Positions 2,553-6,161 of a stretch of DNA of 6,445 nucleotides are shown here, piece after piece. Position numbers and translations under genes: made by a program. The DNA lies in contig MTSL01000138.1 in assembly GCA_002794465.1 (NCBI GenBank), positions 1 through 6,445 of the forward strand. Reading direction: 5' to 3'. Source of the DNA: Paramicrosporidium saccamoebae KSL3 (taxonomy: Eukaryota; Fungi; Cryptomycota). The notes beneath the pieces are model-generated. The model ran no database searches and was not told the DNA's origin. It saw only the letters and a list, made by a program, of their open reading frames with translations. Position 1 is the first letter of the stretch. Each line of letters starts with the position of its first letter.

Positions 2553-2831
2553 ATGAGCCTAGTTATCCAGGGCAGGCTTATGGCAGGCCGACCCAAGTTT
2601 TTGACTCGGATTTTGGACACGGCCCATCAGGCGACTGTTATATTCTTGCTTGGTTCCAGCGTTGCTTTGTTGGGGGCCATTGGAGCAAACATGTACAACC
2701 GGAGGAGCTTGCGCTTGGAGAAGCTGCGTGAGGCGCAAGCAGCGGGGTATGATTTGCATGGGACCGAGGGTAGTGTTAGCGGTAGCGGTAGTGGTAGTGG
2801 TGTGTATGAAGCTAAGCGCAATATAGATTAG
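2553..2831 (+). CDS. COX14: Cytochrome c oxidase (complex IV) assembly factor Cox14-like single-TM protein; true start may be ATG 2580 (83 aa)
   Basis: FLTRILDTAHQATVIFLLGSSVALLGAIGANMY aligns with yeast Cox14 as I recall it ([33 protein letters not shown]), sharing TR-x(1,2)-DT-x-H-x-x-TV-x-x-L-x-G, then one hydrophobic helix and a charged tail. Size fits the family. ATG 2580 gives a yeast-like N-terminal length. Confidence 0.8.
   Translation: MSLVIQGRLMAGRPKFLTRILDTAHQATVIFLLGSSVALLGAIGANMYNRRSLRLEKLREAQAAGYDLHGTEGSVSGSGSGSGVYEAKRNID
2778..2801 (+). repeat. Coding 6-bp repeat x4 encoding SGSGSGSG in the Cox14 tail
   Basis: agcggt agcggt agtggt agtggt. Confidence 0.85.
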
Positions 2832-2921
2832 ACAACACACGCCGTGTATAGGAAATGTTCGCGTCATAAAGGATTCATTTTACGAGTTACATGCATCTAT
2901 TTTGATGACTAGGGATTGGTC

Positions 2922-5900
2922 ATGTCTACGAGGTTTCTTGTGGACCACTTGAATGCTCCCCTTGGTGCTGCACTTGGTCACAAGCAGGAATTGCTAAAGA
3001 GCGTCCAGTTGAGCAGCGATGGACACTTTTTGACTGTACATTCATCCACAAGTCCAGCCATTGTTTTGCATACTCTCAGCAGTTCCTGTCTGAAGAGAAG
3101 GTGGAATTTTCGTGCGGCTAGAATCAAGGCCTTTAGACCGGTGCTCTTGTGCAAAGAGTCTACAGAATCTGCGGTTATAATTTATGACGGGAGGCATTTT
3201 TCTCTATGGTTCCCTGAACGCAATGATATTGAGCACTTGCCGCTCAAAGTCGAAGAGAATGTCGTCGACATGAGGGTTTGCTGTTTCTCCTGGTGTGATG
3301 ATGACGGAAACCAGAAATTTGTCCAGGTCCTGGTGGTGGTTACAGAATGCGGACTTGTCTATGCTCTTCCATTGACTTTTGGTCAGGACAGCGAAGCAGT
3401 CGCGTGTCTGCGGATTAGACTCCCCATGAGCGACATTTGCCATGTGCAATTCCACCGTGATTCCAGCGACATGATTCTCATGGGCATTTCAAATCCGGAT
3501 ACTTTTATAATGGCCGAGCTGCCATCAGACTGTTCCCTGAATATTCTTGCCACCATTCCTCTTGAAACTAATGTTATCAATGTACACGTTTTGGCAAAGC
3601 TGGACTCTGGAATTTATCAAATTTGCCGTGTACAGAAGGATGGCTGGATTGATTCAGAGTATCACGTCGAAGAAAAGACATTTAAAGCGTCCAGGTCTAT
3701 TCATCCTGAGACTGCTGACATGGTCTGGAAGGAATCGTCAATTTATCATGGGTGGAACGATCCGATATTGCTTTGCAGGACTAAAGGGCTCTATGTGGCA
3801 TTCAATGCAATTAATGGGACCGAAGTGTTTCGTGAACCAGCGTCAAAGACTGAGGAAATTTACGACTTGTTTATAGATTCCACCCTGCGAGTGTTTCTTT
3901 TGTCGGCTGCTGGCGTAAAATGCATTGATTCAGCAAGCTCTTCTCTGACGTGGCTGCTTTCACTGCCTCGCCAGAAGGAATTTGACTTTTTGGTAGCATT
4001 TGACATTATGCTGCCGTTCCCATTCGACGGAGTATTCACAAACGGCCTGCCGCCACTATTAACTAAACTCTGGACGCTTGTGTCAAACGAGCCTCTGACC
4101 TATCCATTTAAATCGTGGCAGCATCTGCGCAGCATCCTGGACACGATCAATCTTTCCGATTGCGACGTGGAGATTCGACGGATTGTCATTATGTATTTGA
4201 TTTCTCTTGGACAGCCTGGCCGGCTGCACCCCTTCATTCTGCACTATGGCATCAGTGTGGCCGAAGCCATTGAAGCCCAAGCGTATGTAGCGATCGATAT
4301 TGGAGACGCCGAGAGAGCAAAGTATTTATTATCTTTTGTCTCTTTGACACTCTTGCTACAAGACGATATTGACGGTGAATTCCTGTCAGTCCCAAATCTC
4401 GACTCTTTGTCCTGGGGGCAGAGGATCGATGCATTCCTTGAGACGGCTTTGGAGCTTGAAGCCGTCCGAGTTGCAGCTGAATGCACCCCAAGTGCCCGCC
4501 ATGAAATCTTGATCCATTTAATCAGCAAAGCCTCGTCTAATGCAGACTTGTTCAAAGCGCTCTGCACAGCAAGTGGCTTTGATGGTGCCTGTGATGAAAT
4601 GTATGATTTTGCGGTGAACGGCCAGTTGGAAGCGATCAATGAACTTGCCAGAATACTTGTACAAAGGCGGAGATACAAACAAGCGGAGGAGCTTTTAAAG
4701 ATTTCGTCCCAGAATTACGCTGCAGAGATGATGGAGGTTTTTGACACTCTGTGTCCGTCGTATTCTCCGTCTATTGATCTTGTGGAGAATATTTCAGTTT
4801 CGCCAATGGACTGCGATAACAGCCACTTTGACTTTGACTGTCCGGTGGTTGTTCGAAAAAAGCCTGCGACTGTACACGCGTCTTTGGGAACGCCCTCGAC
4901 AGTGCTCATTTCGCGAGCAAGGCCACCTCTTTCTGTCGCCCATCATCCTAAACTGCCCAGCCGACTAGTAAATCTTGTTCAAGCTTCCGACACGTCGCCA
5001 TTTGACACTCCACTCCGATCGAGATTGCCGACGGACGACATGGAGCTGCGGAGCCGATCCATACCATCAAGTCCCAAGAGGTCAGTGTCGCCAAGCTCGC
5101 GAAACACTAAAAGAGCAGTATCACCCAGCCCAAGAAACTTGCAAGGAAACAAACGGTCAATGTCCACGAGTCCGAAAAATGCGAGGAGCCTGGGAAATTT
5201 GAAGAATTCGAAGAGCTTGGGGAGTCGTTCGCGTTCAAGATCGCATAGCCCAGTTAGAGAGGATGCCGATAAAATGGAAAAGACGGCACACTTGTCCAGT
5301 CCTCGGCGCTCTGAACGGATATCGGCCAATACTCCTAGGAAGACGCCTGAGATGCCAGTGGAAATGCCGGTGGAAATGCCGGTGGAAAGGCCGACTGAGG
5401 TGCCGGTGGAGGTGCCGACTGAGGTGCCAATAGAAACACCTGTGAAATCGCCGATGAAGACGCCCGCAAAAACACCTGTGAAATCGCCGATGAAGACGCC
5501 CGCAAAAACACCTGTGAAATCACCGATGAAGACGCCCGCAAAAACACCTGTGAAATCACAGATGAAGACGTCCACAAAAACACCTGTGAAATCACCGATG
5601 AAGACGCCCGCAAAAACACCTGCGAAAACGCCTGCAAAGTCACACACAAAAACACCTGCAAGGTCACCCAAAAAGACGCCCGCGAAAACACCTGTAAAGT
5701 CGCCTGAAAAAGCACCCAAAGAAACACCCGCAACAACACTCACAAAAACACCTGTAAAGTCACCTAAGAAATCGCCAACAAAAAAGCACCCAAGGACGCC
5801 AGCCACTCGAGAGAAACAAACCCCCATAGAGTCTCCCATCTCCAGTCCACGATCAAGCCCTAAATTAGATGTTGCTCCTCAGAACATTACTGTTAGGAAG

Positions 5901-6161
5901 AAGCGGAGGAGACGCAGTAGAAATCCCACTTCAGAAGCTGTTGACAATGCCCAGCCTACGGGTCATTTTTTACGATCGCCCAGTGTCAAAGACTCGGTTC
6001 CTCCAAAACCTTCACATGTACGCACATCTCCGCGGAAGAGGCAATCTCCAGATACCGGTACAATTGGAGCGGATGGGATCTCTAAGCCCAGGAAGAAAAA
6101 CAAGGCGGTTCCTGAACAAATGGTACGCAAAGTGCCACTGACTAAAAAGTCGAAAAAATAA
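2922..6161 (+). CDS. ELYS: ELYS/AHCTF1/MEL-28-like nucleoporin (beta-propeller-like N-terminus + ELYS helical domain + basic disordered S/TPxK tail); 1079 aa
   Basis: The first ATG is 2922 (the track start at 2916 is TTG); TAA at 6159-6161. Three collinear matches to human ELYS as remembered: VLVVVTECGLVYALPL (3327-3374) vs VAAVVTDVGQILLVDL in the propeller; YPFKSWQHLRSILD...IVIMYLI...FILHYGIS...QAYVAIDIGDAERAKYLL (4101-4331) vs YPPASLHAVLD...ITIYLL...FPTVFAIS...QGFWLIDHNDYESGLDLL; and QRRRYKQAEEL (4662-4694) vs QRANYVPALKL. The last roughly 400 aa are S/P/K/R/T-rich and low complexity. Confidence 0.72.
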   Translation: MSTRFLVDHLNAPLGAALGHKQELLKSVQLSSDGHFLTVHSSTSPAIVLHTLSSSCLKRRWNFRAARIKAFRPVLLCKESTESAVIIYDGRHFSLWFPERNDIEHLPLKVEENVVDMRVCCFSWCDDDGNQKFVQVLVVVTECGLVYALPLTFGQDSEAVACLRIRLPMSDICHVQFHRDSSDMILMGISNPDTFIMAELPSDCSLNILATIPLETNVINVHVLAKLDSGIYQICRVQKDGWIDSEYHVEEKTFKASRSIHPETADMVWKESSIYHGWNDPILLCRTKGLYVAFNAINGTEVFREPASKTEEIYDLFIDSTLRVFLLSAAGVKCIDSASSSLTWLLSLPRQKEFDFLVAFDIMLPFPFDGVFTNGLPPLLTKLWTLVSNEPLTYPFKSWQHLRSILDTINLSDCDVEIRRIVIMYLISLGQPGRLHPFILHYGISVAEAIEAQAYVAIDIGDAERAKYLLSFVSLTLLLQDDIDGEFLSVPNLDSLSWGQRIDAFLETALELEAVRVAAECTPSARHEILIHLISKASSNADLFKALCTASGFDGACDEMYDFAVNGQLEAINELARILVQRRRYKQAEELLKISSQNYAAEMMEVFDTLCPSYSPSIDLVENISVSPMDCDNSHFDFDCPVVVRKKPATVHASLGTPSTVLISRARPPLSVAHHPKLPSRLVNLVQASDTSPFDTPLRSRLPTDDMELRSRSIPSSPKRSVSPSSRNTKRAVSPSPRNLQGNKRSMSTSPKNARSLGNLKNSKSLGSRSRSRSHSPVREDADKMEKTAHLSSPRRSERISANTPRKTPEMPVEMPVEMPVERPTEVPVEVPTEVPIETPVKSPMKTPAKTPVKSPMKTPAKTPVKSPMKTPAKTPVKSQMKTSTKTPVKSPMKTPAKTPAKTPAKSHTKTPARSPKKTPAKTPVKSPEKAPKETPATTLTKTPVKSPKKSPTKKHPRTPATREKQTPIESPISSPRSSPKLDVAPQNITVRKKRRRRSRNPTSEAVDNAQPTGHFLRSPSVKDSVPPKPSHVRTSPRKRQSPDTGTIGADGISKPRKKNKAVPEQMVRKVPLTKKSKK
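5352..5807 (+). repeat. Coding minisatellite: 38 in-phase 12-bp units (7 acidic xPxE, then 31 mostly S/T-P-x-K), including five 36-bp higher-order units at 5436-5615
   Basis: 456 bp = 38 x 12. The 36-bp unit acacctgtgaaatc(g/a)ccgatgaagacgcccgcaaaa occurs at 5436, 5472 (identical to the first), 5508, 5544 (diverged, TPVKSQMKTSTK) and 5580, encoding TPVKSPMKTPAK. Confidence 0.95.

Follow-up and report, generated by a model that had tools for sequence, protein, structure and literature searches.

We analysed a 6,445-nucleotide (nt) stretch of contig MTSL01000138.1 of Paramicrosporidium saccamoebae, which is referred to throughout, at its full length, as the window. The window encodes a protein of 1079 amino acids (aa) that is probably the P. 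saccamoebae orthologue of the nucleoporin ELYS/MEL-28 in its long form, working in the manner set out below. P. saccamoebae belongs to the Rozellomycota and is an intranuclear parasite of amoebae (PMC5701793). The predicted protein is arranged as an N-terminal β-propeller, a helical domain and a basic tail, and because of this order its layout is that of animal ELYS rather than that of the ~300-aa Ely5 of fission yeast. A three-part architecture had been proposed in a first-pass annotation of the window, and proved to be real when the open reading frame (ORF), AlphaFold2 models, Pfam matches and composition were examined together. In our view the gene is a genuine ELYS orthologue of a known long type, conserved yet evolving very fast, with a lineage-specific twist in the tail, where S/T-P-x-K repeats replace AT-hooks.

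Family-level assignment of the helical domain to ELYS

Relatives of the window protein were gathered by phmmer over 1.84 billion representative proteins, which gave 11 matches at E ≤ 0.001. ELYS (PF13934) was the best Pfam family for the window protein itself, with longer queries scoring 19–21 bits (E 4.4e-4 to 1.4e-3) and the isolated helical domain scoring 23.3 bits (E 6.6e-5). The curated cut-off for PF13934 is 28.8 bits. A helical consensus of nine orthologues exceeded this, scoring 29.4 bits (E 9.3e-7) across positions 24–217 of the 220 in the profile, and ELYS was the sole Pfam family that it matched. The helical ELYS match claimed by the first-pass annotation therefore stands for the family consensus, whereas for the window protein alone it is sub-threshold. 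ELYS was also the sole or top family in six of eight orthologues (E 6.6e-5 to 0.067), each time in the same region of the profile, and in the helical domain these six are 22–28% identical to the window protein.

Profile comparison by hhalign placed aa 402–470 of the window protein on residues 755–830 of human ELYS. The human query had been checked as PDB "Protein ELYS" (7r5j_T0; 2261 bits over 975 residues). A vertebrate ELYS hidden Markov model searched against the family gave one marginal match in the right place (relative L006, 1.6 bits, where the shuffled maximum was 0.8). The vertebrate profile is narrow (effective number of template sequences ~2) because the homologue search returned vertebrates only.

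Structure prediction was carried out with AlphaFold2, using an 11-row alignment of relatives as input, and the whole model had a mean predicted local distance difference test (pLDDT) score of 74.9. When run on the single sequence, with the alignment left out, AlphaFold2 was uninformative (pLDDT 39). In the model made with the alignment the helical domain had pLDDT values of 65–89, except for a low-confidence loop at aa 475–503. Upstream of the ELYS match, aa 336–387 form a linker containing FDFLxAFDIxxPF, one of the most strongly conserved segments in the family; its residues D16, F21 and D22 (numbering of alignment A4) are invariant. We consider it highly likely that the helical domain is an ELYS domain, and, judged from sequence, this membership is established at the level of the family.

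The N-terminal domain is predicted to be a seven-bladed propeller

In the same model, aa 1–335 comprised 28 strands with pLDDT mostly 80–95. We grouped these strands into seven predicted blades, the first having three predicted strands, and read the N-terminal strand at aa 3–5 as probably completing blade 7. A β-rich N-terminus of ~390 aa had been described for this protein; it is a β-propeller in the AlphaFold2 model, but one of ~335 aa, as residues 336–387 are linker. Foldseek searches of the PDB with the model gave 658 matches at E ≤ 0.001. Leading these were seven-bladed WD40-type propellers (Cdc20, RbBP5, Ski8 and WDR4), aligned over ~320–390 columns, and the leaders also included the propeller-plus-solenoid proteins WDR11, IFT-A subunits and Elp1. 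Human ELYS (7r5k_T0) was among the matches at E 5e-7, with both domains aligned. The propeller fold, for which the first-pass annotation had called for an AlphaFold and Foldseek check, was thus recovered at good confidence and with WD40-type matches.

Sequence comparisons gave a different picture for the propeller. A Pfam scan of the proteins and their consensus detected neither a WD40 nor a Nup37-type signal in this domain, and when the N-terminal profile was aligned by hhalign with an ELYS-bb profile made from vertebrates, the score was 19.4 over 18 columns, with a reversed control at 16.7. It had been suggested that a VVT-E/D-x-G motif in the window protein resembles that of the human propeller. 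The strings are indeed alike, VVTECG at aa 139–144 having its counterpart in VVTDVG of the human protein, but the two sites were unpaired in every profile-profile alignment. The family pattern at this site, T-x-[DEN]-G, in which the glycine never varies, is typical of many propeller blades. We therefore dropped this likeness as evidence of homology.

On sequence grounds, homology of the propeller to the ELYS propeller family is not shown. The case for it is architectural and comprises the domain order, the direct juxtaposition of propeller and helical domain as in animals and unicellular holozoans, and the fast evolution of the gene. Because a sequence tie to PF16687 (ELYS-bb) was undetected, retention of the propeller, as opposed to its fusion, is argued from domain order alone.

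A basic tail with S/T-P-x-K repeats in place of AT-hooks

The C-terminal part of the protein is a disordered tail of 425 aa, in good agreement with the basic tail of ~400 aa noted in the first pass. Between aa 654 and 1079 there are 94 K/R and 29 D/E residues, giving a net charge of +65, and P, S, T, K and R make up 62% of residues. The tail holds 44 S/T-P sites, 29 of which are S/T-P-x-K/R, and zero FG (phenylalanine-glycine) dipeptides. S/T-P-x-K repeats bind the minor groove of DNA and are substrates of cyclin-dependent kinases (CDKs). Linker and sperm histone tails of the SPKK type likewise carry S/T-P-x-K repeats in a disordered lysine- and proline-rich context, a likeness to the window tail that is an analogy of composition only.

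Most S/T-P-x-K sites of the tail come from a 36-nt tandem array, of which 7.3 copies (85% match) span positions 5434–5695; at a period of 72 the array extends to 5733. In the tail alignment, the tandem arrays of the window protein were unseen in the tails of its orthologues, and the size and charge of the tail are therefore partly due to recent lineage-specific expansion. The orthologous tails are nevertheless all basic, disordered and S/T-P rich, and the complete ones have net charges of +14 to +30.

The tail alignment also contained short conserved motifs. The pattern [HQ]-P-[KR]-[LA]-P-S-R-L-x-x-x-[VI] was found in seven of the eight aligned tails, with P0008 keeping the S-R-L-A core only, and takes the form HHPKLPSRL-x3-V-x2-SD-x-SP in the window protein. 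It always lies ~60–70 residues C-terminal of the helical domain and matched none of the known motif classes. Near the C-terminus there is a Y/H-x-F/L-R-x-S-T/S-V/I-K/R motif. The basic cluster NITVRKKRRRRSR may serve as a nuclear localisation signal or as a contact for the acidic patch. Clusters of a similar [VI]-T-x-R-[RK]n form are present in L002, L003, L004 and P0008, but in the tail alignment the cluster of the window protein falls outside their columns, and equivalence of NITVRKKRRRRSR with the nucleosome-binding RRK motif of vertebrates is not demonstrable by sequence.

In one relative, P0006 (L008, 138–3347), the C-terminal 30 residues hold two R-x-GRP AT-hook cores, RSGRP and RRGRP, and at about tail residue 99 there is a K-T-V-S-F stretch which fits the RVxF pattern of PP1 docking. 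Both features are absent from the window protein, and the R-x-GRP cores were seen in P0006 only. Together they link the tails of the family to the animal type.

The layout is conserved in uncultured relatives

The ELYS-like gene is carried by at least seven distinct uncultured relatives (L002, L003, L004/L005, L006, L007, L008 and L009), and the three-part layout is kept in about eight relatives. The seven relatives that were looked up all derive from public sequencing runs as assembled by Logan, and one of them was also in ENA. The source runs, in order from L002 to L009, were SRR28204431, SRR21707646, ERZ27237304/SRR13203278, DRR438482, SRR33465434, SRR32119647 and SRR14493015. These data suggest that a sizeable unsampled Paramicrosporidium-like clade is present in public sequencing runs. 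One relative, L008, is by appearance much more G+C-rich, as judged from its alanine- and glycine-rich protein. Among the phmmer matches P0009 (1362 aa, repetitive and taken as bacterial) was a false positive that matched only one 22-aa stretch, nine times. A word-indexed protein search gave zero matches for both the window protein and the family alignment.

Gene order is also shared. The GRASP55 gene adjoins the ELYS-like gene in L002, L003, L004, L008 and L009, and SPT23 and COX14 are kept as well in L002 and L003, whose contigs were long enough to show them. The contigs of L006 and L007 were too short for named neighbours.

Five gene models (L002 8791–11626, L003 10001–12811, L004 2072–4754, L006 800–3024 and L007 318–1750) were spliced over inferred GT..AG introns of 38–58 nt, which restored both frame and alignment. 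Each of these relatives has one short inferred intron, one intron having a TACTAAC branch site, and the P. saccamoebae gene is intronless. In L002–L004 the inferred intron lies at the boundary of propeller and helical domain, just upstream of the linker motif; in L006 and L007 it interrupts the propeller near blade 6. Several of the database matches look like fragments of 300–360 aa (some of them first exons) because gene callers split intron-bearing genes.

The ELYS-like orthologues are ~25% identical, as against 52% for the adjacent SPT23 proteins (window versus L002). As the ELYS-like gene evolves very fast, loss of the propeller sequence signal is to be expected.

Weighing the ELYS assignment

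A number of results weigh against the ELYS assignment. The single-sequence ELYS matches all lay under the Pfam curated cut-off, and two of the eight orthologues had no ELYS match in Pfam. Comparison by hhalign with the vertebrate-only ELYS profile was not significant (E 0.13–0.77). Profile searches of solved-structure sequences did not recover ELYS: the whole-family profile returned only WD40 (LST8) noise at E ~1, and the helical-only profile gave zero matches. Among the Foldseek matches ELYS ranked only 35th, after generic WD40 and coat-like proteins, and the mouse propeller 4I0O was not in the top 50. A check of the propeller against PF16687, also called for in the first pass, came out negative throughout, whether run on the window protein, on each of the 11 members of the family or on the N-terminal consensus. 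The best weak matches of the propeller were to other nucleoporin propellers, NUP159/214 (E 0.0068) and Nup88 (E 0.064). Finally, a motif scan found GRP and RGR nowhere in the window protein, so that the AT-hook hallmark of animal ELYS is missing.

One alternative is a protein that is not ELYS at all but another propeller-plus-helical scaffold, for instance a different nucleoporin or a protein resembling coat components or WDR11, whose match to Pfam arose by chance; WDR11, IFT-A subunits and Elp1 were top Foldseek matches, the individual ELYS scores were sub-threshold and the N-terminal consensus weakly matched the NUP159/214 propeller. We consider this very improbable. The helical consensus matched ELYS alone, over the cut-off and across nearly the whole profile, and the match recurred in six orthologues that have diverged to 22–28% identity with the window protein in this domain. 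Furthermore, the structured part of the protein, at ~610 aa, is too short for solenoids of the Nup120/133/155 or IFT type, and FG repeats number zero. Nup159/Nup214 was rejected as a candidate, as the N-terminal consensus scored 16.2 bits with PF16755 (cut-off 29.6 bits), FG dipeptides were nil and the downstream domain is ELYS.

A second alternative accepts the helical domain as ELYS and takes the rest as a secondary fusion, in which a short Ely5-type helical domain was joined to an unrelated propeller (Nup37-like or otherwise WD40-type) and the likeness to animals is convergent. The lack of sequence similarity to ELYS-bb would fit such a fusion, as would the generic nature of the best Foldseek matches, the inferred intron at the propeller-helix boundary in three relatives, and the size of the propeller, which at ~335 aa is far more compact than the 494-aa propeller of mouse ELYS. 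However, domain order and direct juxtaposition equal those of animal ELYS, and the propeller has no WD40 or Nup37-type Pfam signal either. Very fast evolution of the gene predicts a lost propeller signal, and retention is more economical given the long ELYS of holozoans and the probably ancient origin that a review infers for ELYS. We therefore regard fusion as unlikely, and prefer an inherited long ELYS. An ELYS of the short Ely5 type was ruled out, since the protein runs to 1079 aa and its ELYS domain is flanked by a propeller and a 425-aa tail.

Set beside known proteins, the long-ELYS assignment finds its nearest parallel in vertebrate ELYS/AHCTF1 (human Q8WYP5; structures 4I0O, 7R5J/7R5K and 7VCI/7WB4) and C. 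elegans MEL-28, which have the same order of parts. The Paramicrosporidium protein differs from human ELYS in being half the size or less (1079 versus 2266 aa). Compared with vertebrate ELYS, its propeller is ~335 rather than ~494 aa and lacks the PF16687 signal, a tandem S/T-P-x-K array stands where AT-hooks are absent, and identity is too low for phmmer or the vertebrate profile to connect the two. The ~300-aa ELYS proteins of S. pombe (Ely5) and C. thermophilum, both fungal, share the helical Pfam ELYS domain but consist of it alone, whereas the Paramicrosporidium protein adds a propeller and a 425-aa basic tail. Closest among non-animal opisthokonts is the long ELYS of Chromosphaera perkinsii (Shah et al., 2024), in which a propeller and an ELYS domain are combined as in Paramicrosporidium; that protein was found by standard orthology, whereas the Paramicrosporidium one needs the family consensus to pass the Pfam threshold.

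We found a single survey of how ELYS domains are organised, and it reports fungi with the helical domain only, from a sampling almost entirely of Dikarya, the single fungus outside them being Conidiobolus. A supplementary table marks ELYS as present in what we presume to be the Spizellomyces column, its headers having been inferred from accession patterns (Shah et al., 2024). In the searchable open literature we found no paper that treats ELYS together with Rozellomycota, microsporidia, Mucoromycota or named chytrid genera. As holozoans have a long ELYS and its origin is probably ancient, parsimony would lead one to expect a long ELYS in fungi that branched early. If the Rozellomycota do have it, the short form would have arisen by later loss among the fungi and would not characterise the kingdom as a whole. 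The value of the finding is limited by this same parsimony, as the ancestral layout is predicted by it, and also by the unproven homology of the propeller and an organism that is not tractable.

A possible mechanism and its bearing on mitosis

In animals, ELYS starts the rebuilding of nuclear pores on chromatin. By analogy with animal ELYS and Ely5, the propeller and helical domain of the P. saccamoebae protein may bind the Y-complex at its Nup120/160 arm, on the side of the pore that faces the nucleus. The tail would then keep the protein on DNA or nucleosomes through multivalent electrostatic contacts of the SPKK type, not through AT-hooks. Its 29 S/T-P-x-K/R sites fit the full CDK consensus, and phosphorylation of these may switch binding of the tail through the cell cycle. 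The sequence does not tell whether such a protein acts as a seed for pores on chromatin once the envelope has broken down, or only as an anchor and assembly factor for pores of an envelope that stays intact.

One way to extend this mechanism is to take a long chromatin-binding ELYS as meaning that the envelope breaks down fully or partially and that pores are rebuilt on chromatin after mitosis. ELYS length has been used among several correlates of open versus closed mitosis in ichthyosporeans, in which long and short ELYS track open and closed mitosis respectively (Shah et al., 2024). A strongly basic tail dense in CDK sites would also be expected of a chromatin tether that is switched in mitosis. 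Counting against this, microsporidia, the closest large group, divide by closed mitosis. The P. saccamoebae genome paper makes no mention of mitosis or nuclear pores, and such differences in gene content, ELYS length included, have been called insufficient for placing species as open or closed (Shah et al., 2024). We find envelope breakdown of this kind doubtful; the step from a long ELYS to open or semi-open mitosis in P. saccamoebae is pure inference by analogy.

A still broader proposal would be that this clade of fungal parasites, which live inside nuclei, keeps an ancestral chromatin-tethering ELYS, has swapped AT-hooks for a rapidly expanding S/T-P-x-K array of CDK-consensus sites and re-seeds its pores on chromatin after envelope breakdown that is at least partial. 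Taken whole, we think this improbable. If true, the shortening of fungal ELYS would postdate the divergence of the Rozellomycota, which would then be fungi with an animal-like post-mitotic assembly of pores. For the long-ELYS assignment itself, the gene offers a concrete protein for studying what a parasite that lives in nuclei does with its own envelope.

The locus and neighboring genes

The coordinates of the gene and its features are given in Table 1. The ORF spans 2916..6161 on the plus strand, with its first ATG at 2922 and neither an internal stop nor an intron. An N-terminal M-x-x-[RK]-F-x-x-D-x-[LIV]-N pattern was common to the ELYS-like protein and its orthologues in the alignment, and the start at 2922 is considered sound because the orthologues begin at an equivalent position.

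Table 1. Features of the ELYS-like gene (positions are those of the window; residues are those of the encoded protein).
Feature	Position	Strand	Residues	Basis
Complete coding sequence, ELYS-like nucleoporin, intronless	2922..6161	+	1079 aa + stop	ORF list, translation
Predicted seven-bladed β-propeller	2922..3926	+	1-335	AlphaFold2 with alignment, Foldseek
All-alpha domain, ~12 helices, contains ELYS domain	3942..4751	+	341-610	AlphaFold2, consensus versus PF13934
Conserved linker motif EFDFLVAFDIMLPFPFDG	3978..4031	+	353-370	Family alignment
Core Pfam ELYS (PF13934) match of the window protein	4083..4373	+	388-484	hmmscan, hhalign
Disordered basic tail	4881..6158	+	654-1079	Composition, motif counts
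Conserved short linear motif HHPKLPSRLVNLVQASDTSP	4941..5000	+	674-693	Tail alignment
12/24-nt tandem repeat, (E-M/V-P-V/T)n	5347..5428	+	~809-836	Tandem Repeats Finder, translation
36-nt tandem repeat array, KTPAKTPVKSPM units	5434..5733	+	~838-937	Tandem Repeats Finder, motif list
Basic cluster NITVRKKRRRRSR	5883..5921	+	988-1000	Motif scan

Along the 11.8-kb contig, SPT23/MGA2 is followed by a small COX14-like gene, then by the 1079-residue gene and an oppositely oriented GRASP55/65 gene. The first-pass annotation had placed the ELYS-like gene beside fungal-type genes, and this was confirmed for its upstream neighbor, a fungal-type SPT23/MGA2 gene at 90–2336 on the minus strand (Pfam E 1.4e-36). 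The SPT23 protein of the window is identical at every residue to one encoded on MTSL01000138.1 in assembly GCA_002794465.1, and the prefix MTSL is that of the P. saccamoebae genome. A scan of a contig collection made up of bacterial and archaeal genomes gave zero matches for the SPT23 neighbor. Packing is tight, with ~90 bases between the COX14-like ORF and the ATG at 2922.

Two minus-strand ORFs within the gene, 4979..5839 (286 aa) and 5335..5739 (134 aa), have repetitive GVF/GDF translations and were rejected as genes, being by-products of the coding tandem repeats. The COX14-like ORF at 2553–2831 (+) encodes 92 aa (83 aa as called) and had a weak, sub-cut-off match to COX14 (E 0.0012); its assignment is supported by its counterparts in L002 and L003, which carry a recorded COX14 Pfam match. 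It also carries a (GS)n stretch from a 6-nt tandem repeat at 2769–2801. The SPT23/MGA2 gene has 9-, 18- and 27-nt tandem repeats at 1271–1402, encoding HSTHSTHSAHSAHSAH and (IAPTPL)n in a stretch that separates its DNA-binding and IPT/TIG domains. In BLASTP comparison with the L002 orthologue this stretch was poorly conserved and in part gapped, and from its sequence it looks like a lineage-specific low-complexity expansion.

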